This document shows positions 285 to 40,008 of a stretch of DNA of 64,000 nt, one piece after another (within the stretch, counting starts at the first letter, position 1; each line of letters opens with the position of its first letter). The DNA comes from Penicillus capitatus. Taxonomy: Eukaryota > Plantae > Chlorophyta. Made by a program: the position numbers and the translations under genes. Below the pieces are notes generated by a model. It saw nothing but the letters and a program-made list of their open reading frames with translations, did not search any database and was not told the origin of the DNA. The stretch lies in contig OZ287714.1 of NCBI GenBank assembly GCA_965649825.1, forward strand, positions 1-64,000, in the 5' to 3' direction.

Positions 285-622
285 TGTAGGACATGTAGCC
301 CTTATCTGCCGTCGTCTAACCACCGGAAGTAGTGAGCCGTAGCATAACCATCCAGGCGCGCTGACCATCGGTCGCGACGGATGCCGGTTCTCAAGCTAAC
401 TTCCTCATAACGTTAGGCATGTGGTTATGCGATATGCACTAGGAGTTCGCAGCTGTTAGACACTAAGGTTAGGAACTCCCGAACCACCACGAGTATTTAA
501 GGCCGACATTTCGCCTTGTGATTATTCCTGTTCACATCCAAGAGAATCTGATTGCGTTTCTGTCGTTCGTTGCGCGAGAGAGCCGACTCTTTCTGAACAC
601 GTTGTTACATCGATTCCCGATA
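285..622 (+). repeat. 5' LTR of the Gypsy element (TG...TA)
   Basis: Starts TGTAGGACATG, ends TTCCCGATA; contains TATA-like TATTTAA; matches 5223-5560. Confidence 0.95.
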
Positions 623-624
623 GT

Positions 625-640
625 TGGTGGACCTCCGGGG
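625..640 (+). promoter_or_regulatory. Primer-binding site TGGTGGACCTCCGGGG, predicted tRNA-Ala primer
   Basis: Begins TGG 2 nt after the LTR. The reverse complement CCCCGGAGGUCCA-CCA gives discriminator A73 and U70, the tRNA-Ala G3.U70 identity position. Confidence 0.75.
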
Positions 641-675
641 CAACAGTCGAACGTTTTCTATCGTTTTGACTGACC

Positions 676-3600
676 ATGCAGATCGAGTCAATTCCCTTTC
701 CACGCTATGATGGACGCAGTGACCCTAGGAGATGGGTCCACAAGATGACCACGCTCTTCCGATTGCAGGAAATCGACGACCTCCCAGGGACGCGCGCTGA
801 AATCGCAATCGCGCTGCTGGATGGACCAGCTGCCGATTGGGCAGAGCTCTATTTTGACGCCGCCGCAAACCTGCATGAGCAGTGGGCGGATTGGAGTCAG
901 GCCTTGACCGACCGGTTCGTACGCGAACAAGACCCGGAGCGTGCGCAGGACCTCGTCCGACATGTGTTCCAGAAGCGCGGGGAAACGCTGGTTGCTTACG
1001 CCGAGCGTTTCATGTTGATGTGCACTAGGGCTCGCCCCGCGTTGGACCATGACCGCTATCACAAATATTGGCTGAGGGGGCTGCGCGACGAACGCGCGGC
1101 GGAATATGCATTCACAGTACTTGCCGCGTCGGGTTTGGCGCCGACCTTTGACCACGCTTTCCGCTATGCAAAGCGCGCGACGGAAGCGAAAACAAACGTC
1201 CGTGGACGGGTGGAGACGGACGAAGAAGAAGATGAACCGGAACTGGAGCTGAGACCCTTGAAACGCGGGGCGACGGTCCGCCGAGGGGACGGAGCCCGTC
1301 GACTTGAGAGCTCGAAGCAAAAAACTACAACCATCGTCGCTGAACAACCGGCGGCGGATGACTCCGACGACGAAGAACTCCGCCAACTCCTCGCCGGACT
1401 GACCAGCCTACTCGCAAAGAAGCAAGAGAAGCGGCGAGCGAGACGCGCCGAAGGCAACGCGACCCGCTTTGTCGAATCCGTATCCGAGAGCGCAGACAAT
1501 GCGGATGTCGAAGCAACCGCCAGGATGGCGAATGGGGATGGACCCCCACCCAGTAAGCGACTCCGAGGCGCGTCGGGAAAGAAAGCGCGAAAGCCGCGCA
1601 AAAAACCCGAGCTCGACCGAGAATGGGCGGACTACGCTGCCCAAGCATGGGCCATTCCACTGCGATTCCTGAAAGGACGCAGCAAACGAGAAGTGTACTC
1701 CCAGGTGATTTTGGCACTAAGGGATGCCTTTGGCTTCACGCCGAAGCCGAAGAAAAAGAAAGCCGAGGAAGACCAGCCCTCCGCGTCGGCACCTCCGCCA
1801 CAGACCGACGTGGAAATGGAGCAACCCGCGCCAGCATCGCCTCCTCAGCAAACCGCCCTCGCTCAGAGGCGAGGTGCGAATGAGAAGCGCTGCAAGGTGT
1901 TCGTGGCGGGGCAGTTCGTTGCCAAAGTGATTGTCGACCCAGGATCGTCCCAGAGTATAATGAACAGTGCTTTCGCCAAACAGCATGGCGTGAAACACGC
2001 GACTCCAAGCCGGGGCACCTTGCTGTTGGCCGATGGATCCGTTCAAAAACCCTGGGGACGCACCGACGAGGTGCGCGTCGACGTCGGCGGAGTAGTCGTG
2101 CAGCAGACGTTTAGCGTTTTGCCAACAAGGAATTCTTACGATATCCTCCTCGGCACCGACTGGCTGCGCACCGTCCATGGAAGGGCCAACTTCGACGACG
2201 GGACTTACACCTTTGGTGTATCGAAGCGCATTGCCGTTGTTCCTAGATGGCGCAAGCTTTACTTCGCCAAGGAGCAACCCCGAACTGTGGAAGACGACGA
2301 CGACGCTTCCGACGCAAGCAGCGAGTCAGATATGGCAGCCGCTCTGGAGGAGTTGATTGAACAAATGCAAGCCCTCGCCAGCGAGAGTGAAAGTGAGGGT
2401 GAAAGCGAGAGCGAAGAAGAATGTTTTCTCGTGCTAAGCGACCAGGTACTGGGAGAACTGCATATTAACCCAAGATTGCAGCCTGAGGTGCTTTCGGGTA
2501 TCCGCTCCCTCGTTGGCGAATACGTAGATTGCTTTGCGTTGACCTTTGAAGACATGGTCAGAACGCCTCTGATGCAATTTGAAATCGAATTGCGCCAAGG
2601 AGAAGTCGCGAAGCGCTGCGGGCGCACGCGACGTTTGGCGCCAAAAGAAACCGAATTCGTGAAAGCCCAGATCGATGAGTTACTCAATGCTGGTCTGATC
2701 GTCCCCTGGGAAGAAGCTGCCAGACGATTCGGCTGCCCAAAGCGCAAGGATCGTTGGCTGTCGCCAATAACTATTGCGCCGAAGAAAGACGGTACCTTTC
2801 GTTTCTGTTGTGCCTACCAGAGGCTCAACGACGCCACTATTCCCGACAAGTTCGTTTTGCCACGGGCGGACGACTTACTCGATCGCGTCATGGGTCACGC
2901 ATGGTACTCGGCCCTAGACGGGTTCAGCGGATATTATTCCCTAGGGTTACATCCCGAGTCCGTAATGAAGACGGCTTTCGCTACAAGCTTTGGCGTCTTC
3001 TGTTGGCTCGTTCTCCCCTTTGGGGTGACGAACGGTCCCGCTGCCTACTCACGTTTAGTCGAGCAAGTATATGGCGGATTGGATCGAGTCGGCGTCTTCA
3101 TCGACGACGTCTGTTGTGCACACCAAGACGAGGCCGGCATCGTGGAAGACTTGCGACGCGTGTTCGAACGCTGTCGCGATGGAGGACTCCGTCTGAAGCC
3201 GAAGAAGTGTTTCGTCGGCTATCAAGAGGTCGATTTCCTTGGTCATCGGCTGTGCCCCGACGGAATGCGCATGGACGAAATCAAAGTCGAGAAAATATTG
3301 AAGATGCCTCCTCCCAAGGACAGAAAACAAATGCAATCCCTCTACGGCATGTTTTCGTACTACCGCCGTTTCCTCAAGAACTTCGCTAGCATAAGTGCGC
3401 CGCTGTCGAGCCTCCTGTCGACGCGTCGGGACTTCGAGTGGACTCCCGAGGCCCAAGGGGCACTGGAGGAGTTGAAGAAGCTCCTGGTCGACGGAGCTGT
3501 TCTAGCAGCCGTTGACGAGGACCTCCCTTTCCTGGTCGACACGGATGCTAGCGCGTATGGAGTCGGTGCCGTTCTGTCGCAAGAGCAAAATGGCGAGGAG

Positions 3601-5115
3601 CGACCGATCTACTTCTACTCTCGACTCCTGAAAGACGCTGAGACACGATACTCTACCACGGAGCGAGAGGGACTGGCATTGGTCGTTGGCTTAAAGAAAT
3701 TCCGCGTCTATGTTCTAGGGCGCAAAGTGGTCGCTCGAACTGACCATGCAGCACTGTCGCACATGCTGCGCAAAACAGACCTAACGGGTCGCATTGCCCG
3801 CTGGAAGCTCATCCTCTCCGAGTACGATGTTCATTACGTGACGAGGTCTGGGGAAAGGCACCGCAATGCTGACGGACTGAGTCGCCTGGTCGACGAAGAT
3901 TTGGCGCCGCGACCAGTCAATAACGAGGGAGAATGCGATGAATGCCCTGTTCTCGTGGCCGAAGAGGTTGCTGCTGCGTTCCAAGCTTGTCCAGAGTATG
4001 CAGAAGCCCTCTTGACAGCCAACGAACTAGGCAGTCGTTTCCGGTGGGGTGAGCGCAATCTCTTCTACGAAGACTTAGATGGCCGACGCAGAATTTGCTT
4101 GCTACCAAGCCAGGTCCGCGCGGTCATCTCCGAAGAACATTGCGTTGGGCACTTTTCCGCTGAAATAACCCTGCAAAGATTGAGACAACGCTACTGGTTT
4201 CCAAGGATGCGCAAACAAGTTCACAATGTCGTGAAGACCTGTCAGACCTGCCAGATGTTTGGCTCAAGACCCCCGATTCGAAGCACCCTCCCCATAGCTG
4301 TAGAAGAACCATGGGAGCTGGTTGAGCTGGATACGGTCGTCGGGCTGCCGGCGACACCTCGGAAGGCTGTTGGATTCGTGACAGCGATCGACTGCTTCAC
4401 GGGCTACGTAATAACTGAGGCATTGACGTCCATGGGAGCAGCGAAGACCCTCAAGTTCCTTGTCAATAAAGTCATTTGCGCTTGGGGCGTGCCGCAGAAG
4501 ATCCTGACGGACAACGGGACAGAGTTTCGAGGCGTTTTTGGCGAGACAGTGAAGAACCTGAAGATCGAGCACAAATGGTCTACACCACGTTACCCACGTA
4601 GCCATGGCAAGGTCGAGAACGTGCAGCGTCTCCTACTCGACCGCCTGAGGAAGTGTCCGAACCCGCGAAGCTGGGATGAAAACCTTCCGGCCGCGACCTT
4701 CGCCGTGAACGCGCGTCGAGGCAAGTTCCTGTCACCACTCGAACTTCTTACAGGGGTCGTCCCGAAAAGCCGCACAGAAGTGGATCTGTTGTCCGGCGAA
4801 CCTAGAGGTAGTGCAGAGCCGCTACAATCCGCCCTCGCCGATCGTCTGACGAACATGGCGCTCTGCCGCGAGCAGTTTCGTGACTCGTCTAAGAAGAGCC
4901 GCGAGTCCTGGACCAAGGAGGCTGGTATGCAGCGTATTGATCCCGGAACGGAGGTCCGTGTCTATCGACTTGAAAACCACGGAAAACTCGAGGCGACGTT
5001 CGAGAAGGGTGTCGTGACGTGGTGGGGGAATCAAGGAGCTTGCAAGGTGTTAGTGGGTGGCCGCGTGAAGAGAATGCCGCAGTTCTGTGTGAAGCCGTGG
5101 ATCGCTTCCCAATAA
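676..5115 (+). CDS. Gag-Pol polyprotein (capsid-type Gag, aspartic protease, RT, RNase H, integrase), 1479 aa, intronless and uninterrupted
   Basis: Gag (FPRYDG..W...QKRGETLVAYAERF..WLRGL); protease IVDPGS...ILLGTDWL; RT FRFCCAYQRLN, LPFGVTNGP, FIDD; RNase H VDTDAS..YSTTEREGLA..RTDHAAL; integrase H-H-C-C zinc finger and LDTV/TDNGTEF/GKVEN DDE. Confidence 0.97.
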   Translation: MQIESIPFPRYDGRSDPRRWVHKMTTLFRLQEIDDLPGTRAEIAIALLDGPAADWAELYFDAAANLHEQWADWSQALTDRFVREQDPERAQDLVRHVFQKRGETLVAYAERFMLMCTRARPALDHDRYHKYWLRGLRDERAAEYAFTVLAASGLAPTFDHAFRYAKRATEAKTNVRGRVETDEEEDEPELELRPLKRGATVRRGDGARRLESSKQKTTTIVAEQPAADDSDDEELRQLLAGLTSLLAKKQEKRRARRAEGNATRFVESVSESADNADVEATARMANGDGPPPSKRLRGASGKKARKPRKKPELDREWADYAAQAWAIPLRFLKGRSKREVYSQVILALRDAFGFTPKPKKKKAEEDQPSASAPPPQTDVEMEQPAPASPPQQTALAQRRGANEKRCKVFVAGQFVAKVIVDPGSSQSIMNSAFAKQHGVKHATPSRGTLLLADGSVQKPWGRTDEVRVDVGGVVVQQTFSVLPTRNSYDILLGTDWLRTVHGRANFDDGTYTFGVSKRIAVVPRWRKLYFAKEQPRTVEDDDDASDASSESDMAAALEELIEQMQALASESESEGESESEEECFLVLSDQVLGELHINPRLQPEVLSGIRSLVGEYVDCFALTFEDMVRTPLMQFEIELRQGEVAKRCGRTRRLAPKETEFVKAQIDELLNAGLIVPWEEAARRFGCPKRKDRWLSPITIAPKKDGTFRFCCAYQRLNDATIPDKFVLPRADDLLDRVMGHAWYSALDGFSGYYSLGLHPESVMKTAFATSFGVFCWLVLPFGVTNGPAAYSRLVEQVYGGLDRVGVFIDDVCCAHQDEAGIVEDLRRVFERCRDGGLRLKPKKCFVGYQEVDFLGHRLCPDGMRMDEIKVEKILKMPPPKDRKQMQSLYGMFSYYRRFLKNFASISAPLSSLLSTRRDFEWTPEAQGALEELKKLLVDGAVLAAVDEDLPFLVDTDASAYGVGAVLSQEQNGEERPIYFYSRLLKDAETRYSTTEREGLALVVGLKKFRVYVLGRKVVARTDHAALSHMLRKTDLTGRIARWKLILSEYDVHYVTRSGERHRNADGLSRLVDEDLAPRPVNNEGECDECPVLVAEEVAAAFQACPEYAEALLTANELGSRFRWGERNLFYEDLDGRRRICLLPSQVRAVISEEHCVGHFSAEITLQRLRQRYWFPRMRKQVHNVVKTCQTCQMFGSRPPIRSTLPIAVEEPWELVELDTVVGLPATPRKAVGFVTAIDCFTGYVITEALTSMGAAKTLKFLVNKVICAWGVPQKILTDNGTEFRGVFGETVKNLKIEHKWSTPRYPRSHGKVENVQRLLLDRLRKCPNPRSWDENLPAATFAVNARRGKFLSPLELLTGVVPKSRTEVDLLSGEPRGSAEPLQSALADRLTNMALCREQFRDSSKKSRESWTKEAGMQRIDPGTEVRVYRLENHGKLEATFEKGVVTWWGNQGACKVLVGGRVKRMPQFCVKPWIASQ

Positions 5116-5222
5116 AGTCGTCTTGTGCCCATTGATTCTACCTTTCCCTAGGCAAGGCTGTTTTCCTTTTCGTTGTGTCACTTAAACGTCGGGACGAGAC
5201 GTGTTAAGTGAGGAGGAGTCAT

Positions 5223-5560
5223 TGTAGGACATGTAGCCCTTATCTGCCGTCGTCTAACCACCGGAAGTAGTGAGCCGTAGCATAACCATCCAGGCGCGCT
5301 GACCATCGGTCGCGACGGATGCCGGTTCTCAAGCTAACTTCCTCATAACGTTAGGCATGTGGTTATGCGATATGCACTAGGAGTTCGCAGCTGTTAGACA
5401 CTAAGGTTAGGAACTCCCGAACCACCACGAGTATTTAAGGCCGACATTTCGCCTTGTGATTATTCCTGTTCACATCCAAGAGAATCTGATTGCGTTTCTG
5501 TCGTTCGTTGCGCGAGAGAGCCGACTCTTTCTGAACACGTTGTTACATCGATTCCCGACA
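5223..5560 (+). repeat. 3' LTR of the Gypsy element (TG...CA)
   Basis: Starts TGTAGGACATG, ends TTCCCGACA, followed by TSD GAATT. Confidence 0.95.
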
Positions 5561-5710
5561 GAATTCTATCGCCGGAATCTTCGTAAACTGAGTCTATCTT
5601 CACGTTCTTCTAAAGCGCAACAATTGCTTCTTCGGTCGGCGAATTCTCTCAGTCCGAGGAGCGAGGAGGAAAACTACCGCCCATACAGCAACCTCGTGCC
5701 TCGTCCGCTC

Positions 5711-5987
5711 GGCTCCGAAACCATGTCAGCGCCTCGACGCTCGGACGCGCAGAAACGCGCTTACGACGAAGGCGTATCGATTAAACGAAGACTGTTAACA
5801 ACAGTTTATCATCAAAGTTGTTTCTACATAGGCATCTGTGCTATTTACACCGAAAACGCGAAGATCGCGGCGAAACACAAAAACCTAGCGAAACTTGTTA
5901 AAAGGAACGCTCTTCAGATTTTCGCGACAATTTATCTTTCCATCATTCTGTCACATCCGTCTCTGTCACGAGCATCTGTCGCTCACA
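5711..5987 (-). mobile_element. Putative 5' LTR (5724-5987) plus PBS (5711-5723) of an older minus-strand LTR element into which the Gypsy inserted
   Basis: On the minus strand a 264-bp segment runs TGTGAGCG...CGCTGACA (imperfect terminal inverted repeat) directly followed by TGGTTTCGGAGCC, the same 12-mer PBS as the element at 32897. The partner LTR would lie left of the window. Confidence 0.45.
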
Positions 5988-6057
5988 GCATCCAGCGCCG
6001 CCGTTGACTGACTTCTTTCTTTTCTGTTGCCTTGAAGTGGGCATTGACCAAATCATT

Positions 6058-6310
6058 TGTTGCCAAGTTTTGATTGGCGATGTGACTGCTTAGATTTTCC
6101 AGGGTTCTGTCTCCGAAGGGGTAACTTATTTGAGGTTTACGTCATCTAGGGTTCCTTTCCTATGCTCTGCTGTGAGAGGCGGGTGACTCACCTGTCCAAT
6201 CACCTTTAGCACACAAATATGGGAATGTGAACTCGAAGACACCTTTTGCTCTGTAAACGTAGAAGCCTCCTCTGACACATATCTCTTGTGATGGTGAGGT
6301 ATTTGTTGAA
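6058..6310 (+). repeat. Decayed solo LTR related to the LTRs of the 32897-34721 element
   Basis: Collinear shared blocks TGTYGCCAAG, TTGGCGATGTGACTGC, GGGTGACTCACCTG and TTGCTCTGTAAACGT(G)AGAAG. The 253-bp interval is flanked by TCATT on both sides (6053-6057, 6311-6315), but the right end lacks CA. Confidence 0.6.
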
Positions 6311-6816
6311 TCATTCCTTCTCTGCCTTTCATGACCATGAAATTATTCACATGGCTATCACTGTCCGTTTTCGTTTTCTTGCCAGACAAAGTCACCTTAT
6401 GTAAATTGAGATATAAGACTCTTTCGGGAAACAGGGCAAGCGACTTCTGGTTTGGAGAAATTGTCGGTGTCCGTTCTCACGAACGTGAATGCGTTGCTTA
6501 CAATGGCCGACAATCCCCAAGTCCACAGAAACCTCTTCTTTCTTCTCTTGCGTCTTAGGGAGTCTCTGTCGCAGCATCTCATACAGAGAATCTTTCACTT
6601 AGTCTCTCTCGTGGAAACTGATCTCAATTGCTTCCTTCCATTCGATCTAGTCTTTCTCGATTTCCTTCAGTTCAGTGTGTGTTATGCAAACGGTCGTCGT
6701 TTGTGAAAAGATTATTGCTCATCGCAAGAATTTTCGCTTCTTTGCCGTTTCATATAACTCGAGGGTTTTCCCAATTCCTGGTGATAGAGACAACAGATCT
6801 CTGTCATTGCGACGAA

Positions 6817-8722
6817 ATGTCGTCCGATGGAAGGCAAGACGTGTTGAGACCGTTGTCGCGGTCGGGTCTGAAATCGGCCAGTCAACGCACACGACCACGG
6901 ACGCAAAGCACAAGTGCCTGCGATCTGTCCACTCAAGTCGTCGAAGATGTTGCCGAACACTTAAGGAATGCCATTCATCAACGAGAGGTCGACACATACG
7001 ACTGATGTCCGACTCTGGCGTTTCTCCAAATCTAGGGCGAAATCGAATTGGCGTCAAGAGAGCTCGAAAGTAGAAAGAAGCTCTCCGCGGAAAACGAAAA
7101 AATCGTTCAGGATAACCGTCAACGCGAATCTCGACTGGCCATTCTCTCCGCGACGCTCGAAAAGGCATCTTCACGTATGGCGCGATCGCCGTTCTTGACA
7201 AGACGTTTGTCTTCTGCAGTGTCTATCTCGTGTATCCCCTGAAGAATTTCGCAGAGAAGTGGAAGGACACGAGCAGCACAACGAAAATCTAAAACGTACA
7301 CTTCAGGTTCTGTCTGGCGACATCAAAGAAAACAAACAACGGGCCTTGCAAGTTATCTACCATCCATGATGGAACCCGAGTGTCTCGCGGCGGTTGTAGG
7401 CCGAAAGGTCCATCCAAACTCAGAAAACGCGATACAGCGAGACAACAAAAGAGAGTGAGTGTCCACAGCTGTCTTGTTTCCGGAAGAGATAGTCGGTCGT
7501 TAGCTGTACAGCTGGAAGTGCTGACGAGGCGTCGACGCGTATTGATGCAAGAACGTCACAGGTGAAGCGACGACCCAAACGTCTGTCGTTAGAGTTACAT
7601 CCCCTTTTCCTGACGCACAGATTGCGGTCTCTAGTACGTTGTGGAGAAAGAGAACTCCGGTATTGTCCGACGAAGCATGAAGCGTACCGCGACTTTCTAT
7701 TAAACCTCGATAGACGGCAGCCTCGGCATGGGGCCATGCTGCACGATTCGGGTGCTTTTCCCGATATCGACGCCAGAATCGCAGAACGGGCGCGGGAGAT
7801 ACTCCATCGTCGGCAACAGGTGCGCTCGTCTCCCTTGACTTGTTTCGATTCATCGATCTACCTTTAGCGATTTTTAATCGAATCGCCGTTTGTACAATCG
7901 AAGAGCGATGTCCGAGAAAAGCGCACGGGGTTCTCTTCGATGAACATTTTCTTCCGGAACGGGAAAACGTCGGTTGTAGAGATCCACATGAGCTGCAAGA
8001 GATGAAGGAATATCTGCAGCAGTTTGAAGAGATCAAAGATGACCGACTGGCTGATCTCCATCACGAATCGCAACGGATTCTGTCTCTGTTGGACAGCTGG
8101 AAAAACCGCATGACTCTGAAAGAGCTCTTACAGAAACTCTGTGTTAATCAGGTCGTGCGTCCACTTGCTCAATACAAAGCTGATGCTCATGCTTTCTCCA
8201 GGACACATGTGGACATGAGTTCATCGAACGCAGTCTGTCGGATCTTCAACAGAAGGAATCCGAACTGCGCAAAGTCGACGTTCTTGAAGAAAAAATAAAC
8301 AATGAACTGGCGTCTCTTAAAGGCCAGATGCATTCCCTTAGCGAATCCCTTGAAAAAGATCGACATCACCACGAACGGCTCGTCTCTGAAATCCAATCTT
8401 TAAGAGAAGAAGAGGTGAACCACAGGTCAACAAGTATCCGTTTATCCTCTCATCTTTTTGCATGCATGGATAGGATGGCGCTCAGAAACGGAAGGCTGAG
8501 TTCAGAGAGCGTCTCCGTGCAGCAGAAGAAGAATGGAAGAGACATGAGCAATGGGAGGAACTCCTGTCGCTCTATGAAAACCAACAAGAGCTTCACAGCC
8601 GTGTCGTGATGTTGAAAGAAGACCGATCGTGGGAGAATGTTCAGATGGCCAAAGAAAATGCCTTTGCTCTTCTCACAGACTTAAACTCGAAATTGCAGTC
8701 CACTGTCAAACTGGATGGCTAG
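6817..8722 (+). CDS. Uncharacterised multi-exon coiled-coil protein
   Basis: Exon chain with GT-AG introns of about 50 nt giving heptad-rich segments (LSDLQQKESELRKVDVLEEKINNELASLKGQMHSLSESLEK; AEFRERLRAAEEEWKRHEQWEELL). Family not recognised; start codon uncertain. Confidence 0.6.
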
Positions 8723-25868: not shown

Positions 25869-26239
25869 ATGAAAGTGCCCGTCGGCGATTTGAAGACGTT
25901 CATTGCGAAGGCGAGACTTGTCCAGCTGTACCGTGACTGTTGGCGTGAGGTGCAGAAAGCGCCCGAAAATACCAGACGTGAGGGGATGGTGGTGGTGGTT
26001 GGATGTTTGTGGCAATGTGTGTAGGGGATCTCGCCGAGTACGTGCGTTCGCAGTTTCGCGACGCCGATCTGCCCAGGACACCCTCCGCTCTACAGTTTCA
26101 GATCGAATCGGGAAGGCAGGAGCTCAAAAACTATCGTGCTTCGCTGGAAAGGACGCAACATAATCTCAAATACTTCCACGACGTCGACCCGCCCAAGCTT
26201 CTGTTTCACAAAAAGGTTATCAAGAGGAAGCCGCGATGA
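25869..26239 (+). CDS. LYR-motif protein (LYRM2-like)
   Basis: Two exons: MKVPVGDLKTFIAKARLVQLYRDCWREVQKAPENTR|RDLAEYVRSQFR...QIESGRQELK; stop TGA at 26237-26239. Confidence 0.8.
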
Positions 26240-29200
26240 AGCTGTCACATCAGTTTCTCGAACGCAAGAACCAGCAGGGATTATCGGGTCCGTGTCCCTT
26301 TGCCATGTCCGATGTGACATCTCACGGATTCGGCTGATTGAAGGGGACAGATCGCGCAAGGGGAGTGTCGATACAGCGATCGTCGATCTCATCGAGGAAA
26401 TGAATCGGCATCCTCTGATGTACACGACGAGCAGCTGTTCTGGAAGAGTGTCGCTTTTTGAAGAGGATCTGATGGGCTGTGTGGGAAGGAAGGGAGGGGA
26501 GTGGATCTACGTGTCCCATCAGGAGCCGGAATGGAATGAACTGTACGACGCAATGCAGAGATGGCGGGAAGGGGATGGGACGAAAAGGGAAGGGAAAGAC
26601 AAAAGATGGAACTTCCGTTTTGAACCGTTCATCGTGGCATGCGAATGCGGAACGCTGGAGACGGCACGGATGCTTGTGCAGATCGGCAGGGAAGCAGGAT
26701 TCCGTGAATCGGGCATCGTGCTGGGAAAGGATAGAATCCAGGCCACTGTTCGTTCCGCGGCGAGAACAGAGATTCCGGTGTGTGAGCACGGCATCATGCT
26801 GATGGCAGAGTCCTCTTGGGATGTGCTGTTGCGCATTGTGCGTGAGAAGTTTCGAAAGAATGGAGAGAAGATCGATGCTTTCCGGCATCTCTTTCATACG
26901 ACCTTTGCTTCGCAAACGGGACCATCCCTAGAAGCCACGCCAGACGACCGACGGCCTGCATACGAGGACGGATCCCTACGATGGCAGACAATGGCACCAA
27001 GACATGCCTCCGTTTGTCCATTCACACGGAGTGCAGAGATGCATGATGGACTGTTTCGAAGGGATTGGAGCGATGGGGACACAGCGTTTGCGCGGCGAAG
27101 AGTTCGGTGCTCATCTTTGGAGGATATGGTGGGAAGAGAGGCCATCAGCGACTCGACGATATGCTTCTCTACCATCCAGCCACCAACACTCTCACGGAGC
27201 AGACAGTCACCGGTGATATTCCTTCTCCAAGAATGGGTCATGCATCTGTCGCCGTGGGTGAGACGCGCGCACGTCTTGGGGAATCGATGAAGGATGAAAT
27301 GCACGACAGGGGACGCTGTGTACATTCTGGGAGGCAGGACGCATCCAGGCAACGCTCTGAGTGACGTCTATCGAGTGGATGTCGACAACTGGACAGCTGC
27401 TCAGCTGCCGGCATCGTTTCCTGCGCGATTCCGTCACAGCGCCTGTGTGTACGGAGAGGCAAAGATCGTTGTGTTTGGCGGATGCACATCCGAAGGACCT
27501 ATGAATGACGTCTGGATGATGGATGCCAAGCAACAGGAGATCTTTACACCGATCAAGACTCAAGGCCCGAGTCCAATGCCACGCATGAGTCACGGAGCAT
27601 GTGTACAGGGAGATTGGCTCTTTGTGCACGGAGGGTTTGCAGACTATGGCCGTGTGTACAGCGATCTTTTCAAACTGAATCTGAAGACGTTTTCGTGGGA
27701 AGCCGTCTGTATGGATCCGTTTCGCCTGCCGGAGTGCTTCTCGCATTCTTTGGTGGCCCTGGATGAAAACATTCTTGCCGTCATCGGCGGCTGTGGTCAG
27801 GCCGAACCTGAGAGAATCACTCTCTTCGATCCGGGCAGTAAAAGTGTGAGGGTGTTGAGGACAGAGATCCCTACCGAGGCAGCATGGGTGCCCATACGGC
27901 AGGCGGCTCTGGTGCTTGAAGACCGACTGTTTGTCGTCGGCGGGGGTGCTTTTTGTTTCAGTTTCGGATCTGCTTTCAGCTCCTCCTTCTCGATGGAACG
28001 CTCTCACCTTGTTTTGCTCTTTAAATCTGGCACGGCGAGGAAAGTCGATATTGATGTGCCATCTGCGAGGAGTGAGAGAGTCGTGGGGATTGTTACGAAA
28101 AAGACCGAAGCCAAGAGGGTGAAGGACACACTCAAGGTCCTCAACTGGCTGGATCCTGCGTACAAGAGCACGGTCTTGGAGATGGGGAACAGAATTGCTT
28201 TTCCCGTTCTGGCGGCCCACAGCCAATCCGTGGATGCGCTCCACACCGTCGCTTCGCCCAGAGCCTGGGCAGAGGAGAAGAAGATCGATCGCGACGCCGT
28301 GTATCAGCTGTATGAATGGCTGTGCAATGGAATGGCCACGGTGCAGTGCATGGATTTCGTTCGTTCTAGTGCAGCGAGCACACTCTCCCCTGCCAAGCGG
28401 CTAAGACAGATGATGGCATCTCGATTGAAGGCACTCGATGTGAAAGACGCCGAGACGTTGATGAGAGAGCTCCCAGAAAAATGGGAGAAGTTGGGAGACA
28501 TGATGCTGTTGCCTGCAGAGAGCATGTGCTCTCCCTTCTGGACAAAAGGTTTTGGAAACGATCTGTGGAAAGACGTGGCCGAAGTGCTGGAAGGCCGTCG
28601 ACTCGCCCGGCAAGCCACCATCCGCGCATCCGGTATAAGATGCCTTCTGCTGCGACCCAGGCGAGTAGCTGTGTGGTTTTAGAGACAAGAGATGCGCGGG
28701 TGGTATTGCTCTATGGCGAAGACGGTTGGGTCACACACAAAGAGAACGGCATCTCTTTTCAGCTGGATGTCACAAAGTGTATGTTCAGTTCGGGAAACGT
28801 CTCGGAAAGAATGAGAATGAGTGAGCTGAGCTGCCACGGTGAAACAATCGTAGATCTCTATGCCGGCATTGGATACTATACACTGCCTCTCCTCAAGCAA
28901 GGCTGTGCGGAGAAGGTTCGCATCCTTGTGTCGTTTATGACGAGATCTATGCAGCTGCTGTGAAGGTGATTGCCTGCGAATGGAATCGACATGCTGTGAA
29001 GGCTCTGAAACTGAATCTACGGGCGAACGGCGTTGCGGATCGTTGCACCGTCCTCTTCGGCGACAGTCGTCGGATAGCTCCCGAATGTGTTGCTGATCGA
29101 GTGATTCTGGGATTGCTGCCATCCAGCAAAGGCGGCTGGAAGACAGCCCTGACGTGCTTGAAAGCGACAGGTGGTTGGCTACACCTTCACGAGAACGTCA

Positions 29201-30449
29201 CTGATCGAGATGAGGAGAGCTGGATGCAAGACACGCTCAACGAACTGAGAACGATGTCCGTCGAGATGCAAAGGAACTGGAGTATATCCGTGGAGCACCG
29301 TGAACACGTGAAGTGGTATGCCCCACACATCCGACACGTGGTGCTGGACATCCGCTGCCAAGTGCCAACAGCGAACACCGATCTCCCATTGTCCTCGCCG
29401 AGAGCGAACAGCATCTCCATCATCGACGCTCCGTCTGCAGATCGATTCTGGGCAGAGATCGTAGCCAAGAGACGTCCTGTCCTGATCCAACGTACGTCCC
29501 CTCTTCCACGGAGATCGTGCTTGGAAAGGGGACGGGGCTGTGTGTCAGATATGGATGTGGGGTGTGCTGTCGGTCAGTGGTCTGCTGACTATCTGATGGG
29601 GCACGCCGAGGCGAAAGAGACGCGTGTGAGTGTCCACGTTTGCCCAGATGCGAAAGGAAGGATGCGTTTCGTTCCACGTAACTTTGAGTTTCACACCATG
29701 TCCTTCTCGGAACTCATCCAGCGATGCACCTCTGCTCACCGTCTCTCTCCTCTGATCCAGCCAGGAGAGCACTATTATCTCAGAAGCATCGGTCAGAATC
29801 CGAGGAAGGTACACGCGGCGCCTCGCTTGCGCAACATCTCCCCTGCGATTCTGTCCCGCAGGAGAGGTCATCGATTCACGCAGCCTTCCCGCAACTGGCA
29901 CAGGAAGTGAAGCTTCCTTTGTGGATCGCCAAGGAGCGTGTCTTCTCCACCGTGCTGCGCGTCAGTTCGCCGCGGCTGCAGCTGTGGACCCACTTCGATG
30001 TGATGGACAATCTTCTCATCCACATCACGGGGAGAAAACGCGTCAGGATGTGGCCGCCGTCTGACGATGCCCGTCTCTATGTGACGGGATCGAGTTCGGA
30101 AGTGACAGATGTCGAGCATCCCGATCCCACACAGTATCCAAACTTCAAACCGCCGACCCTCGAGTTCGATCTCCTTCCTGGCGATGTCCTGTACATTCCT
30201 GCCCTCTGGTTCCATCACGTCACATCAGAGAGCTTCGCGGTCTCCGTCAATCTTTTCTTCCGTCACCTCGCCGATGAGACCTACGATCCCAAGGATCTCT
30301 ACGGAAACAGAGATCCATTGCCAGTGCAAGAGGCAACGGCGTTTATGGATCGCATCCTGAAGCTTCTCCATTCCCTGCCTCCCGATTTTCGACAGTTCTA
30401 TGGACAGAGACTGCAAAAGCAATTCGCAAATGGACTCGATGGTTGTTGA
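26236..30449 (+). CDS. Wybutosine-pathway fusion protein TYW3-Kelch-TYW2(Trm12)-TYW5(JmjC)
   Basis: TYW3: DRSRKGSVD...YTTSSCSGR; Kelch repeats (LIFGGYGG, YILGGR, VFGG, VHGG); TYW2: GWVTHKENGI...CMFSSGN...VDLYAGIGYYT, DRVILGLLPSS, VKWYAPHIRHVVLD; TYW5: YYLRSIG.NPRK, LWTHFDVMDN, GDVLYIPALWFHHV. All junctions splice in frame and there is no stop between TYW2 and JmjC. Confidence 0.88.
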
Positions 30450-31670: not shown

Positions 31671-32896
31671 TCGTACGACAGATTTGATATGGTCTGTTGG
31701 TTTGTTCGCTGCAGTACTGAGATAGATAGACGGATAGTGAAAGCGTGGTCTTTGCTGACGTGTCTTCTCTTGGCGATTGTAGAGATCATCGGTACGCTAT
31801 TCGATCGAGGGCTGGGTTCTGACATTGCTAGCTGGACGATTTAAGAGCGCGTGACATCATCACGAGGAGGAGGGGGGGCTGTTTCACACATTCTCTCACT
31901 CAAGTTTACGTTAAACTAACTCATCAAAGACAGCACTGTCATTCAATTGGGCGTGTGCTCTACAGCTCTTATTCATTTTTGCGATGAATGCCGTTAGAAT
32001 GAATGTTCAGAAAGGCCCTTGGAAAATGGCGAAACTGACTCCAATGACAATGCCGTTTTTAGCTTTCACATAGAGCCAGTATACCGTTTTCGTGAAATTC
32101 AATTTTTTCGATTTGCAGTCAGTCTTGGTGGCCATGTACTATTTCTGATGCCGTTTCCACTTGTATCCAACAGAGAGACAGATGGACAGACAGCGGACGC
32201 AATAAAGCATATCTTCCCTCAGCTCATGTGCCTTTACACGATCTCTCTGTCCTTGTAAAGCATATGATGAATACACATCATTCTTGACATCAGTCAGAGC
32301 CACGGCTTCTGCCAATGAAGGTGGAAGGACGCACAACGGTGCCACACTTTAACGTTTCGCAAAGATGGCATAGGGTCTCGGAGTCTTATTTCACTGAGTT
32401 TATCAGAATAAAGATGTCTTCCTGATATACGAAGGGGGCAAACCATCATTCACCAAACCTCTCGCTCGCATGGATGTTGAAACTGAACTTAAAAACTCAA
32501 GTCATCGAAATGGCGCATTCATCCGAAATGCCAATCAGATGGTGTGATGGAAGGCATGATGCTGCGCGTCCGGATCGGTGATGTGACGGACAGACAGATG
32601 TTGATGAGACGTGACGCGGCAAAGAAACTGTAAGAAAGGGACAGGGGTACCCACTGCATCGCTTGCACCGCCGTCAACCGCAAACAGGGTATGTGCTCGT
32701 TCGATGCGTGTTGAATTCTGCGTGCTCTCGTCGAGAAAGCGGATGTCCTTTCGAGTTCTATGTATCGTCTGCGAAACACCTGATGCGTCACGTTGTCTCT
32801 CTGCTTAGACCTCTCGAATGGTCTAGATCTTGTTCCTCTGGCAAAATGCTCGATGCCGGGACAAAAGAGTCAATGGAGAAATGAGTGAGTGAGATG

Positions 32897-34721
32897 TGTC
32901 GCCAAGATCTGGCTTGGCGATGTGACTGCCTCGTTCCTGAGGGGTTTACCGCTTGGGGGGGACGCAGGTTGACTCACCTGAGGCGCTATCCTCTGGTTCT
33001 GGCGCAAGGGTGACTCACCTGCCTCGGCATGTCACGTCGCCACGGGGATATTTAAACGGACAATTCGCACCATGTTTGCCCTTGCTCTGTAAACGTGAGA
33101 AGTCTTCCGCTGTTGTATCTTTCGTCCGACCCGACCGGCGACAAGTGGTTTCGGAGCGTCGTTGACGTTCCTTTGTTTGAAGCTCCGTCTGCGTGACGTT
33201 GCGCATTCGCTCTGTGTGTTGCGCCCTCCTTGGTGGAGGTTGAGTCCTGCCTAGACGAGGTCTAGACACGAGGAAGCTTCAAGGGACGACGGTCTAAGGA
33301 TGAGTCGAACACGAAGAGAATGGGGAGCGGAGCAGGGTCACTTAAAGGAGGGGTCTTTCTATGCCACCGCTGTTGGGTCGACTTTACTCAGCGAATTGGA
33401 GGAAGACGCGGGTCTGTACCCTGGTACCTTGTGGTATGCTAGGGTGCGGATACGGCCGGAACTTGTCGCTTCTTGGCACGGGGCGGATCAGTTTCTGATC
33501 GGGGAACGGGAAGTGAAAGCGTTTGTGAAGTACATCTGCCCCCGGCTGCGAGAGAGGCGCGAACTGCAAGAGACGACAGGACGATTGCGCGAGGAAAGAG
33601 AGCGGCTACGCCAGCGGGTGGCGACCCTCGACGCAGAGAACGAGCAACTGCGACAGCAGTTGCGGGTCGAGCGAAAAGGGGCCTCTGAGGCGAAGCAGAG
33701 TTTTCGCGAAGGAAAGGAAAAGGTCCTACAGCGTGAACAGCAAAACGTGTCTGAGGCGCGAAGAGCATGTGCCGAGGCGACGGCAGAAAGCGAGCGGCTC
33801 AAGGCCGTCAACTCGAAGCTGCAGAAGGATATCTCCGAGGCGAAACAAGGTGTCATCGAAGCACAGCAAGATGCGCACGAGGCACGCGTAGAAGCCTCCT
33901 CTATTCACGAGAAGCTTGAAGAGACAGAGACCGCCTTCGCAGAGGCAGAACGGCATTTTATTCGGGCACCCGATTTGGTGCCTTGTTTACAGTCACTGGC
34001 CGCTGAGGTGAAGACTCTGCAGGAGACCGTACGGACGCACAGCGAAAGAACGGCTGAGTTGATGACGACAAGACCGGTAGAGGAACGGAGAACCGTGAAG
34101 ACGTTGCATCAGATGAAGCGCGTCTTGCACGATATTGGGCGGTTCCCGCGCCGACGACGGACGAGAGCAGCCGACGCGGCAGACGATGGCAGAAGAGCCA
34201 TGAGACGCGGACGGCTTTGCTATAGCTGTCGATGTAAGGGGCACCTGGCAGAGGATTGTCCGCGAGTGCGGACCGCAGATATGGTTGAGTCATCGAATCC
34301 GACGACATTGGATTCGCAGCAGAGAGCGGGGGAACCGAACACAGAAGCATCATCATCTTCGGGATGGACCATTTTCTCGGCGCTGCGACGATTCACCTCG
34401 GGCATAGACTGATTTCATTAGATTCTTTTCGTGGGGGACTGCTTTACCTGTTTTCGGAGTTTGGCGGGAAGCGTGGTGTCGCCAAGATCTGGCTTGGCGA
34501 TGTGACTGCCTCGTTCCTGAGGGGTTTACCGCTTGGGGGACGCAGGTTGACTCACCTGAGGCGCTATCCTCTGGTTCTGGCGCAAGGGTGACTCACCTGC
34601 CTTGGCATGTCACGTCGCCACGGGGTTATTTAAACGGACAATTCGCACCATGTTTGCCCTTGCTCTGTAAACGTGAGAAGTCTTCCGCTGTTGTATCTTT
34701 CGTCCGACCGGACCGGCGACA
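32897..34721 (+). mobile_element. Non-autonomous LTR retroelement (1825 bp) with a single coiled-coil/CCHC ORF and no pol
   Basis: LTRs 32897-33143 (247 bp) and 34477-34721 (245 bp), both TGTCGCC...GGCGACA, differing by 3 substitutions and a 2-G indel; TSD AGATG (32892-32896, 34722-34726); PBS TGGTTTCGGAGC at 33146-33157; purine-rich GGCGGGAAGCGTGG before the 3' LTR. Confidence 0.93.
33300..34412 (+). CDS. Element-encoded 370-aa protein: novel N-terminal domain, about 200-aa coiled coil, CX2CX4HX4C zinc knuckle
   Basis: Intact intronless ORF filling the internal region; heptad-rich residues about 65-250; CYSCRCKGHLAEDC knuckle preceded by an Arg-rich stretch; no protease/RT/IN motifs. Confidence 0.85.
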   Translation: MSRTRREWGAEQGHLKEGSFYATAVGSTLLSELEEDAGLYPGTLWYARVRIRPELVASWHGADQFLIGEREVKAFVKYICPRLRERRELQETTGRLREERERLRQRVATLDAENEQLRQQLRVERKGASEAKQSFREGKEKVLQREQQNVSEARRACAEATAESERLKAVNSKLQKDISEAKQGVIEAQQDAHEARVEASSIHEKLEETETAFAEAERHFIRAPDLVPCLQSLAAEVKTLQETVRTHSERTAELMTTRPVEERRTVKTLHQMKRVLHDIGRFPRRRRTRAADAADDGRRAMRRGRLCYSCRCKGHLAEDCPRVRTADMVESSNPTTLDSQQRAGEPNTEASSSSGWTIFSALRRFTSGID

Positions 34722-36401
34722 AGATGTGTTGCCGGGATGTCGGTATGGATCGGAGTACTGTGCACAGATCATTTCGCGTGGGGTCTGTTATCCAGAATTT
34801 AACACCAAAGCCTGTTCGGCGAGGCGACACTCTCATTCGGGAGCTGCGTGTCATTCCCTCCATCCATCATCAAAACAGCAGCAACACTCTTTACCTTTAT
34901 AAAGAGGTTTCAGTGAAGGACAGAAACAGAAGAACATATGCAAAGGAATCGGGACCTTGGCGAAACGAAAGGTATGCCTTCCATCAAAGGACGTTGAGAT
35001 TTATCTAGCATAGACAGGTGTACTTGGCCGAGCGGCCGAAAAAAGAGCAGAACGAACAGTGCGTGAAATCTCCGAGATGATGAGAGATTCGACAGTCTCT
35101 GATGGACGAAAGGGTTCGCGAGGTATTGAGGGCGATGCGTCAGTGACAACAGGCTTTGTCGTATCGCCGCCGGTAATACGGTTGAGCGTGGCCAATGCTG
35201 TCATACTCACCATTCTGCCAGAGGCGCCATTTGCCCAAAGTGCAAAAGAAGAAACACGCGAGGAATACGCACACCACCACGACAACAAACCTCAAAGGCC
35301 GCGTGTCTTTCTTTTCGCTTGGCGAGCCAAAGGTTGTTCACCGCAATCTTCTTTTATGGTCACATCCGTCCGCGATAACATACTCGCGTGATGTGACAGC
35401 AGCATGCACCAATGATCATCTACAAGTGGATCTGCAAAGTGGCGACCCTGATGTGATGTGACGTGACAAACAGATGATAGACAACAGGGGATGACCATCA
35501 AAGTGGACAAAAGAGTGTCAAGGTCAGAGTAAACATGAGATCCAGCCGGTCACTCGAGCATTGCTTGACATCATCTGATGCGAATGTGAAGAGCATGGGA
35601 AACATGGACAGGCAGCATCATGACACAATGATGTCCAGTAGTTAAGCGACTGCAGCCCCTTTACGAATGGAGGGTCACATCTCCAGTACCCTCGGTCGCT
35701 CGACGGCTGTTCAACCACGATATCGACAACAACCGCCTGTTGTCACGCAGCACAGAATTCTCAAGCCTCTGACGTTTGAAACAGTCGATGCCTAGTGGCA
35801 CGAATAGGTCACGTCAGCGTTGACTTAGTCATCCTCCCGCCAAGCGACAACCCGTTTTCATCAAGTTCTCAAGCGGACAACGACAACACGCCTTTAAAAA
35901 GGTCACCCGGTCACCTTCCGTTGGCTCCCGTGCACTTTACTCTCGAGCATTCGTCTACGCGGAAGACTTCGCAAACGATGGACGCGGCGGTGACGCACGG
36001 CGGATAGAAACACGAGGCGGTACCTGTATCGTGTACTGCGCCGTGTGGATTTCGTTCACCCCTTATTCATCTTAACAAGCGCAACGAACCAACACCGCGT
36101 TCTTAGCCAGCCACGTGGATGGGTGTTGTCAACGCTGTGGTTCGTCCGTTCATGAACGACCCTTTAACAGCGACGGATAGCCATAAATTCAACGGAGCCT
36201 TCCTACGGCAAAGCTTCGCCGTTTTTGCACTTTCGCCCGCCTCCTTTCTCCGTTCCCCGTCCCAAGATCTTTCCCCAGTCGAAACAGCGTCCGTCTTCGG
36301 TGACCGCAGATTCCTCGCCATCATTTTTCCCGGCCTTAGCGAGAAGGCACTGAGACGTCGCGATTGATTCGGTACCGTCGAGGACGTTGCACACTCGATA
36401 T

Positions 36402-39387: not shown

Positions 39388-39665
39388 AATCTGATCACGA
39401 AGCGAACTTGTGGAGTTCGTATGTCTGTCCTCTGGTTCAAATTGACTGTGTTATTCCTGAAAGCTTCTGCGATTAAAACAGACATTCGTTCGCTGGTTCT
39501 GCTGTTGAGAGTGTGTAATCGGAGCTGAGGACTTTGAATAATGGGGTAATGTATCCAGTTTTCAAGGGTTTCAACTTTCCTGTGCACTCTGCTGGTGTCT
39601 ATCTTGACGATTCCGAACGAAAAGAGCCAAAAATGTCCATTGACGAAATGGCGGCTGGGTTCAAT

Positions 39666-39753
39666 GCCTCGGTGGCTCAGTTGGTTAGAGCGTCGGTCTC
39701 ATAGCACAAAGTGGGAAATCCGGAGGTCGTGAGTTCGATCCTCACCCGGGGCA
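39666..39753 (+). tRNA. tRNA-Met(CAT), elongator type, with a 14-nt intron at 39704-39717
   Basis: GCCTCGG acceptor paired with CCGGGGC-A; D arm GCTCAGTTGGTTAGAGC; anticodon loop CTCATA^A with U31-U39 typical of elongator Met; T loop GTTCGATC; followed by a TTTTT Pol III terminator. Confidence 0.93.
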
Positions 39754-40008
39754 GACACTTTTTACCATGTCGAGCGACGATAGCGTCACCGTCCATGTAT
39801 CAACGGACATCTGCTGCTTCTCGATTGACGGCTAGCCTCTCGTAGCGTCGAGCTCGTCATTGCGTCAGTGGCAGGATCGAAAGGGCGTCGCTGTTACTGA
39901 ACAGTCGTGTGTATGTCGTGACGGAAACGACGCCGTCGCTGTCACATCGCAAGGGACACTGGTGGTTCTTTCTGCGACGTCACGCGATTCTCTCAGCAAA
40001 GGTAAAGG

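Follow-up and report, generated by a model that had tools for sequence, protein, structure and literature searches.

A family of miniature LTR retrotransposons from green algae that encodes a long-helix, zinc-knuckle protein and no polymerase

Among long terminal repeat (LTR) retrotransposons, nonautonomous ones are usually viewed as decayed or stripped copies in which either nothing (TRIM, LARD) or a recognizable Gag (TR-GAG) is kept. Positions 32897 to 34721 of the 64,000-nucleotide stretch analyzed here (the window; positions 1 to 64,000 of contig OZ287714.1 from Penicillus capitatus) raise the question of whether such an element can persist with a single protein that is not a capsid. An earlier note on the window, made from its letters, had described this locus as a Pol-less LTR element encoding only a protein with a coiled coil and one CCHC zinc knuckle, in which no capsid was recognizable. 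Pfam, PDB sequences, AlphaFold models, and Foldseek all agree with that description. We are highly confident that the locus belongs to a nonautonomous LTR family with a selected, noncapsid open reading frame (ORF).

Structure and copies of the element

The window element is a recently mobile 1.8-kb LTR retrotransposon lacking polymerase genes; all its features lie on the plus strand. The 5' LTR (247 nt; 32897 to 33143) and the 3' LTR (245 nt; 34477 to 34721) are 98% identical, differing by three substitutions and a 2-nt indel in a run of G residues. The LTR termini, TGTCGCC...GGCGACA, are of the TG..CA type and form a terminal inverted repeat of 7 bp. Identical AGATG pentamers at 32892 to 32896 and 34722 to 34726 form the left and right copies of a target site duplication (TSD). 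A direct repeat of 247 nt with 98% identity and these hallmarks cannot have arisen by chance. The 12-nt putative primer binding site (PBS), TGGTTTCGGAGC, is located 2 nt past the 5' LTR (33146 to 33157) and is kept across subfamilies. The polypurine tract (PPT) block (34451 to 34476) comprises TTTTCGGAGT, a spacer, and the purine-rich tract GGCGGGAAGCGTGG (34463 to 34476), which directly abuts the 3' LTR. Equivalent purine tracts are present in all complete copies, and the same block occurs in other small elements and in the autonomous lineage Auto-1 described below. The 1333-bp interior (33144 to 34476) contains a single long sense ORF of 370 residues (33300 to 34412, stop codon included). 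The ORF list and Pfam revealed no protease (PR), reverse transcriptase (RT), RNase H (RH), or integrase (IN) in this interior, indicating that these enzymes must act in trans. The account of the LTR identity, inverted repeat, PBS, purine tract, TSD, interior, and ORF given in the earlier note proved exact to the base.

Two short motifs of the LTR are putative expression signals. TGTAA is an established polyadenylation signal of chlorophytes. It is found once per family LTR examined, 25 to 95 nt from the LTR end (25 to 55 nt except in one case), and in the window 5' LTR it lies at 33088 to 33092 within the best-conserved LTR block, GCTCTGTAAACG, where it may act in polyadenylation. A TATA-like box is present in five of the nine distinct family LTRs examined, 35 to 45 nt upstream of TGTAA; its window version, TATTTAAA (33049 to 33056), is on the U3 side and is likewise assigned a presumptive function.

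A protein search returned 31 homologs (36 to 76% identity), none of which exceeds 505 residues, and the 505-residue homolog is an ORF call reading through an LTR. One cluster formed at 90% identity has 16 members, spread over many large contigs. Eight complete copies of 1.39 to 1.92 kb with TG..CA LTRs were found in two assemblies, ENA ERZ25074695, which includes the 6.93-Mb contig of the window, and ERZ26696514. The LTRs of each copy are 98 to 100% identical to each other and belong to length classes of 99, 124, and 247 bp; the window 5' LTR is 88 to 91% identical to the LTRs of the copies at loci L002 and L007. Each of the eight copies is flanked by a perfect 5-bp TSD, and all eight TSDs differ (AGATG, ATATG, GTTCT, TGTTG, GGAAG, GAAGG, AACAC, and GAAGT). 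The family has moved by the LTR route, both recently and more than once. All 13 copies whose DNA was read are located between LTRs or beside an LTR end and a PBS, and none of the 13 carries pol inside its LTRs. One copy, at L004, is nested in a decayed autonomous element between the RT-RH and IN regions, and another (L002 4813 to 6266) has identical 99-bp LTRs and an ORF split in two.

The conserved C-terminal half of the protein was used as a profile against 1.84 billion representative proteins. This search recovered the family and about a dozen distant relatives (22 to 33% identity), including P0051, P0056, P0063, P0065, P0087, P0089, P0093, and P0185, and it detected neither a fusion to pol among close or distant family proteins nor a free-standing cellular homolog. 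The distant relatives have in common the motifs FIxxPDLxxxLxSLxxEVKxL and KxLxQMKRxLHDIxR, an arginine-rich stretch, and the knuckle motif RxCYxCRxKGHLAxDC; P0063 has a frameshift within the knuckle. The rest of the 229 hits were discarded as generic multi-CCHC proteins matching profile positions 110 to 150 only. Some longer hits contain Gag or protease domains (P0106, P0112, and P0133), but these matched the profile solely in the knuckle and low-complexity flanks. Distant relatives were found in ENA ERZ27276715 (L008; 51% G+C), in Joint Genome Institute metagenomes of macroalgal surfaces from Botany Bay (L009 and L010; 41% G+C), and within a 1.6-Mb contig (L011 6697 to 8160). The DNA of three distant relatives displays the same miniature LTR-PBS-ORF-PPT-LTR build, the identical 12-nt PBS, and a recognizably homologous leader, indicating that the chassis and the protein have long traveled together without Pol, across hosts. 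Together with the eight insertions and the several subfamilies, these relatives bear out the earlier suggestion of a family with a history of its own: it is an old lineage of miniature (1.2- to 1.9-kb) nonautonomous LTR retrotransposons of green algae.

Solo LTRs were found at L006 11241 to 11470, L012 3217 to 3370, L002 6429 to 6529, and, within the window, at 6058 to 6277 on the plus strand. The last of these corresponds to the decayed relative placed at 6058 to 6310 by the earlier note, which is real and of the same family but amounts to a diverged solo LTR (TGTTGCC...CTCTGACA): neither a PBS, an ORF, nor a clear TSD was detected after it. It matches LTR positions 1 to 33, 112 to 125, and 186 to 209 collinearly at 85 to 100% identity, gives collinear matches to the LTRs of three subfamilies, and retains the conserved block around TGTAA at 6246 to 6268. 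It was rejected as a 3' LTR of the Ty3/gypsy element of the window, which terminates at about 5559 and has a GAATT duplication of its own.

The encoded protein

Two AlphaFold2 runs, based on an alignment of 29 close members (A1) and on one of 31 members that included distant ones (A4), gave models of the same topology, consisting of a beta-rich head, a 150-residue helix, two further helices, a disordered stretch, the knuckle, and a disordered tail. The small head (residues 12 to 67; 33333 to 33500) was modeled with a predicted local distance difference test (pLDDT) score of about 80 to 89. It is followed by a single long helix, presumably a coiled coil (residues 69 to 219; 33504 to 33956; pLDDT of >93 in both models). 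Indels between copies fall only within this helix, as expected for a coiled coil of freely variable length, and the helix may mediate oligomerization. The next segment (residues 223 to 280; 33966 to 34139) contains the motifs FIxAPDLVxxLxSLxxEVKTL and KTLxQMKRVLHDIGR, whose columns are invariant or nearly so and which are what the profile search picks up in distant relatives. Both models place two shorter helices there, at low confidence (residues 223 to 251/254 and 266/267 to 280). Residues 250 to 305 and 327 to 370 were disordered even with the more diverse alignment. Thus, the head, coil, and single knuckle of the earlier description stand, but the confidently modeled helix spans about 150 residues rather than about 200, and two shorter conserved helices come after it.

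The single CCHC knuckle, CYSCRCKGHLAEDC (residues 307 to 320; 34218 to 34259), follows an arginine-rich stretch (RRRRTR...RRGR) and has the pattern C307-X2-C310-X4-H315-X4-C320, that is, CX2CX4HX4C with basic flanks. C307 and C320 do not vary, at least 90% of the sequences retain C310 and H315, and the motif RxCYxCRxKGHLAxDC occurs family-wide. The C-terminal tail ends in a conserved SGWxIFSxxRRxFTSGID sequence in the clade of the window, and in some distant members the C-terminal end is a hydrophobic, transmembrane-like helix instead.

A capsid was sought at the levels of sequence and fold. Besides a weak match to zf-CCHC, Pfam returned only faint coiled-coil noise for the ORF, and the Gag families Retrotrans_gag, UBN2, PNMA, and Arc gave no signal even at E values of up to 10. 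A phmmer search of PDB sequences produced knuckle-level noise only (all E values of >0.1). Foldseek found no match below an E value of 2.8 in the PDB or below 0.4 in the viral database BFVD; folds of the capsid, Arc, PNMA, and ORF1p types were absent from both, and the head had no significant match.

The ORF is kept by purifying selection, as indicated by ratios of nonsynonymous to synonymous divergence (dN/dS) of 0.23 to 0.44 over its entire length (Nei-Gojobori method on a codon alignment of the window copy and six others). Values were similar for the head, coil, and C-terminal part taken separately, with a few comparisons of short stretches reaching 0.5 to 1.0. Synonymous divergence (dS) is mosaic. 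Between the window copy and that of L006, it falls from 1.70 in the head to 0.30 in the C-terminal part, and between the window copy and L002a it rises from 0.31 in the head to 0.73 in the C-terminal part. This indicates that subfamilies recombine, most simply, we infer, by template switching between copackaged RNAs. The solo LTR of L006 is 90% identical to the window LTR in its first 127 nt and differs in its 3' half, which has its own TGTAA and the end GAGCGACA, pointing to chimeric, recombinant LTRs.

Candidate helper, leader, and mode of propagation

The same samples contain an intact Ty3/gypsy lineage, Auto-1, with gag-PR and RT-RH-IN ORFs. Two copies have 100% identical LTRs, one of 150 bp at L011 9520 to 14347 and the other of 181 bp at L013 2962 to 7860, in the sample of the window itself, and at least 18 clusters of Auto-1-lineage Pol (55 to 95% identity) are present in these assemblies. 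Auto-1 and the small family have in common the PBS TGGTTTCGGAGC, LTR ends of the type TGTC...ACA, a 5-bp duplication, and TATA and TGTAA motifs in the LTR. A PPT block, TCGGAGT-N-GGGAAGCG, precedes the 3' LTR in Auto-1 (L011 and L013) and in other small elements; in full, the Auto-1 block reads TCGGAGT-N8-GGGAAGCGAT, followed by the TGTC of the LTR. No relationship was detected between Auto-1 Gag and the family protein (hhalign probability of 0.7%), no CCHC knuckle was found in Auto-1 Gag, and the leader and LTR bodies of Auto-1 are not alignable with those of the small family. Because of the shared PBS, PPT block, and LTR ends, and since the Ty3/gypsy element of the window has another PBS and another PPT, Auto-1 is the best candidate helper, and it probably supplies enzymes to the family. 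Auto-1 (L011 and L013) is an autonomous element of the kind that the earlier note had thought worth looking for, having the same LTR ends and PBS. The family is probably a satellite or parasite of an autonomous element, as that note had proposed. In Auto-1, the PBS and the start codon of gag overlap (aaaATGGTTTCGGAGC, giving M-V-S-E-L; L011 9670 to 9690 and L013 3143 to 3160), so that the primer binding site is coding sequence.

The PBS, a 12-mer starting with TGG and located 0 to 3 nt past the LTR, is conserved family-wide. It is identical in all subfamilies, in the distant relatives of L008, L009, and L011, and in Auto-1, except for the minus-strand copy of L002, which has C for the first T. 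A hairpin is predicted to sequester the 3' half of the PBS, in which GGAGCGTC pairs with GACGTTCC (33153 to 33171). The stem GGAGC/GYTCC is kept in all 11 aligned leaders, and the stem extension and the loop vary in sequence and length. The conserved leader that follows (..GTTTGAAGCTCCGTCT..GTGACGTTGCGC..; 33172 to 33235) contains two further small hairpins according to RNAalifold, whose prediction for 11 copies comprises 16 pairs, with compensatory changes at 5. The leader may be a packaging or dimerization signal. A PBS-like motif, (T)TTCGGAGT, which repeats 8 to 9 nt of the PBS, is present at 34451 to 34460 in the window and at equivalent sites in L008, L009, L011, L012, and L013, lying 5 to 25 nt upstream of the PPT in the small elements and in Auto-1 alike. 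It resembles the bipartite PBS of yeast Ty3 and, by analogy, could be a second contact for the primer tRNA or a site bridging the 5' and 3' ends. The window contains an intron-containing tRNA gene with a CAT anticodon (39665 to 39754, plus strand; ARAGORN; Rfam tRNA score of 54.7 bits), which was rejected as the primer because the PBS has no match to the 3' end of this tRNA, CCGGGGCA.

The family moves by the normal LTR route, with a transcript of the LTR, presumptive priming by a tRNA-type primer at TGGTTTCGGAGC, priming of the plus strand at the purine tract, and 5-bp duplications generated by integrase. In the mechanism that we propose, elements of the Auto-1 type would provide PR, RT-RH, and IN, and they would probably contribute the shell of the particle too. 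The ORF would be retained by purifying selection because its product, not a capsid, serves the propagation of the element itself. The protein would oligomerize by its long helix, use the arginine-rich stretch and the knuckle to bind nucleic acid, and coat or chaperone the RNA of its own element in the manner of a nucleocapsid or of the ORF1 protein (ORF1p) of long interspersed nuclear elements (LINEs), perhaps via the conserved leader, for entry into helper particles. Since the helper Gag has no knuckle, the protein may also bring chaperone activity for primer annealing and strand transfer. Taken as a whole, an old miniature lineage dependent on an Auto-1-type helper, with a protein chaperoning its own RNA into helper particles, is an account that we favor with moderate confidence. 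The specific assignment of the ORF product as an RNA-packaging adaptor or chaperone is more tentative, falling slightly short of an even chance.

Several points weigh against this account. RNA binding, oligomerization, and the interaction with the helper are deduced properties. The Pfam match to zf-CCHC is below threshold (E value of 0.045; 14.3 bits versus a cutoff of 20.8), and about a quarter of the protein (89 to 99 residues), including the conserved C-terminal tail, was modeled with a pLDDT of <50. Copies were located through their proteins, which biases the sample toward intact ORFs, and the split ORF of the L002 copy may indicate that coding capacity is not needed in cis. Regarding the helper, the sharing of a PBS is weak evidence, since unrelated families may use the same primer tRNA, and a second autonomous lineage (L004 2206 to 8338) has a similar PPT block with another PBS. 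The L013 contig has a coverage of 41x versus 344x for the contig of the window, so that they may come from different organisms and the presence of the helper in the same genome is unproven. Finally, no tRNA gene with the PBS-complementary end GCTCCGAAA(CCA) was found in the 220 kb examined.

The protein could also be an extremely diverged but true Gag that assembles a shell, with the helices of residues 190 to 280 acting as a cryptic capsid domain, which would make the element an ordinary TR-GAG. Its position and order fit Gag, since it is the first and only ORF past the leader and has a basic region and a CCHC knuckle toward the C terminus; moreover, the strong conservation of residues 223 to 280 in a low-confidence part of the models leaves room for a hidden fold. 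This explanation is nevertheless unlikely, because no Gag family was detected by Pfam and no match among PDB sequences, Foldseek returned neither an N-terminal nor a C-terminal capsid domain from the PDB or BFVD, and two models based on different alignments show one 150-residue helix in place of a globular all-alpha capsid. In addition, a capsid of two domains would need more than the 60 or so residues that are conserved. That the element arose once, by internal deletion of a gag-pol element, and lacks an independent life had been considered from the outset; nothing was found in favor of this origin, and it is contradicted by the eight independent insertions with distinct duplications, the several LTR length classes and subfamilies, the distant relatives of the same size, and the failure of the profile search and hhalign to find any longer element with a homologous gag; we attach almost no credence to it.

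Two further explanations accept the family and question the role of its protein. Small elements lacking the ORF but having the same PBS and PPT (the 1.19-kb element of L004 and the window minus strand at about 5560 to 5940) indicate that the chassis can move without the ORF, and one copy with identical LTRs has a broken ORF, as would be expected if a TRIM-like element had captured a cellular coiled-coil and CCHC gene as a passenger with no role in transposition. A passenger should decay, yet purifying selection acts on the ORF when subfamilies are compared, and the ORF is kept with its chassis of LTR, PBS, and leader at 22 to 33% identity in other hosts; furthermore, all 13 members read are associated with LTRs, and the profile search found no free-standing cellular homolog. 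A passenger gene is accordingly improbable. The same low probability applies to a regulator or inhibitor that disrupts the assembly of helper particles, for copy number control or competitive exclusion, like the restriction factors derived from Gag. A small protein in the position of Gag, with an oligomerization module and no enzymatic domain, would suit such a function, as would the coexistence and recombination of many subfamilies. The carriers themselves, however, show fresh insertions with identical LTRs, so that inhibition would be self-defeating unless highly selective, and the protein lacks the sequence kinship to helper Gag on which dominant-negative coassembly would depend.

A more specific form of our proposal is a two-component system in which ancient satellites, encoding in place of a capsid a coiled-coil RNA chaperone that forms ribonucleoproteins and resembles LINE ORF1p by convergence, would be paired with a Ty3/gypsy helper whose Gag has lost its knuckle. 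The satellite would exploit the enzymes and shell of the helper and at the same time provide nucleocapsid or chaperone activity, possibly to the helper too. We consider this version doubtful.

Genomic surroundings and relation to known systems

The window contains a second LTR retrotransposon, an intact and apparently very young Ty3/gypsy element (285 to 5559, plus strand) with LTRs of about 325 bp that show one mismatch near the 3' end, a GAATT duplication, and the PBS TGGTGGACCTCCGGGG. Its single 1479-residue ORF (676 to 5115) has the order Gag (Retrotrans_gag)-PR-RT-RH-IN, without a CCHC knuckle. It was rejected as a parent or helper of the family, its LTR and Gag being unrelated and its PBS (TGGTGGACCTCC...) and PPT different. 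Its insertion at 5559 truncated a member of a second small-LTR family (about 5560 to 5940, minus strand), of which the 5' LTR (end GGCGCTGACA), the PBS TGGTTTCGGAGC at 5711 to 5722, and the leader remain. This leader is 76 to 84% identical to that of the 1.19-kb element of L004, whose longest ORF is of about 130 residues. By sequence comparison, this second family is a TRIM-like sibling with the same type of primer and PPT. At L004 1006 to 10919, four levels of nesting were observed: a minus-strand Auto-1-type element is interrupted by the 1.19-kb element, the 5' LTR of which is interrupted by an autonomous element (LTRs at 2206 to 2372 and 8171 to 8338) that carries a family copy at 5701 to 7092. 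The nested host element was rejected as a source of a gag homolog, since hhalign aligned only a 23-residue knuckle, that is, generic CCHC similarity.

Judged by sequence, including the TGTAA signal present in every family LTR examined, the host is a chlorophyte green alga and not a land plant. The genes of the window are intron-poor and eukaryotic, encoding PP2C, TDP1, E2F/DP, and F-box/WD40 proteins and a TYW2/3/4/5 block. Among named organisms, the closest relatives of TDP1, which place the host only roughly, are from Trebouxia (42 to 49% identity), Bryopsis (44%), and Chlorella (40 to 43%), followed by land plants, with a EukProt protein at 52%; the assembly ERZ26696514 contains a 90%-identical TDP1 fragment. 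Adjacent ORFs at 26136 to 30449 (plus strand) encode TYW3, a Kelch/TYW4-type beta-propeller, a TRM5-TYW2 methyltransferase, and a JmjC/Cupin_8 (TYW5-like) protein, which looks like a fused or clustered wybutosine biosynthesis gene. ORFs of 570 to 590 residues with faint Beta_helix and Chlam_PMP matches were found near family copies (L002 15118 to 16848, L003 2813 to 4579, and L012 5662 to 7675) and probably belong to a multicopy gene or another repeat. Contigs of ERZ25074695 bearing the family have coverages of 344x, 41x, 23x, 21x, 16x, and 13x, and several haplotypes or related algae are probably mixed in this assembly, which bears on whether helper and satellite share a genome.

The family shows that a chassis of 1.2 to 1.9 kb can long retain one unrelated, selected protein, a PBS, and a structured leader, and never Pol. 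Annotation of transposable elements by hidden Markov models that seek Gag and Pol domains will overlook or misclassify such families. If the role of adaptor or chaperone is correct, a retrotransposon parasite is able to evolve a noncapsid means of its own for entry into the particle of its helper, the LTR world has an analogue of LINE ORF1p, and one protein with a leader of about 150 nt makes a very small and tractable system in which selective RNA packaging and the conflict between helper and satellite can be studied in algae.

No description of an equivalent element was found in searches of the literature on nonautonomous LTR elements with coiled-coil or gag-only proteins or on LTR elements of Bryopsidales. 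The window element lacks the PR, RT, RNase H, and IN that define autonomous Ty3/gypsy or Ty1/copia elements, and, in contrast to Auto-1 (4.8 to 4.9 kb, with gag-PR and RT-RH-IN), the family is small and Pol-less and has a knuckle. Many types of non-LTR ORF1 carry a CCHC knuckle. The resemblance to LINE ORF1p put forward in the earlier note holds for the layout: as in LINE-1 ORF1p, a coiled-coil module whose length evolves fast is combined with a basic nucleic acid-binding module, and the protein is presumed to coat its own RNA. It does not extend to homology, since Pfam, PDB, and Foldseek detected no Transposase_22, RNA recognition motif, or C-terminal domain of ORF1p. The family protein further differs in having a head before the coil and the knuckle after it, and it is encoded by an LTR element with integrase-style duplications rather than by a target-primed one.

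Among nonautonomous LTR elements, TRIM and LARD are noncoding, and BARE-2, which forms a pair with BARE-1 in barley, has lost Gag and kept the rest (PMC4350172). Like these, the family relies on an autonomous partner that reads shared cis signals (PBS, PPT, and LTR ends); it is of TRIM-like size, and siblings that lack the ORF but have its PBS and PPT occur beside it. Unlike them, it keeps one selected protein, of 370 residues in the window element, and nothing else. TR-GAG elements are defined by a length of <4 kb, the hallmarks of LTR retrotransposons, at least two copies, and a single ORF similar to canonical Gag, this similarity being to GyDB GAG or to Pfam Retrotrans_gag, UBN2, UBN2_2, or UBN2_3 and permitting assignment to Copia or Gypsy (PMC4350172). 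The family, with 8 copies of 1.39 to 1.92 kb and a single ORF, agrees with this definition in length, copy number, and ORF number but has no similarity to canonical Gag according to Pfam, PDB sequences, and Foldseek. It differs from TR-GAG elements in that its ORF resembles Gag neither in sequence nor in predicted fold and has no relationship to the likely helper's Gag, and in its smaller size (1.2 to 1.9 kb) and its occurrence in green algae. It shares with them the LTRs, PBS, PPT, and duplication, the single knuckle-bearing ORF in the position of gag, the multicopy state, and the presumed mobilization in trans, and TR-GAG is, by structure, the closest known kind of element.

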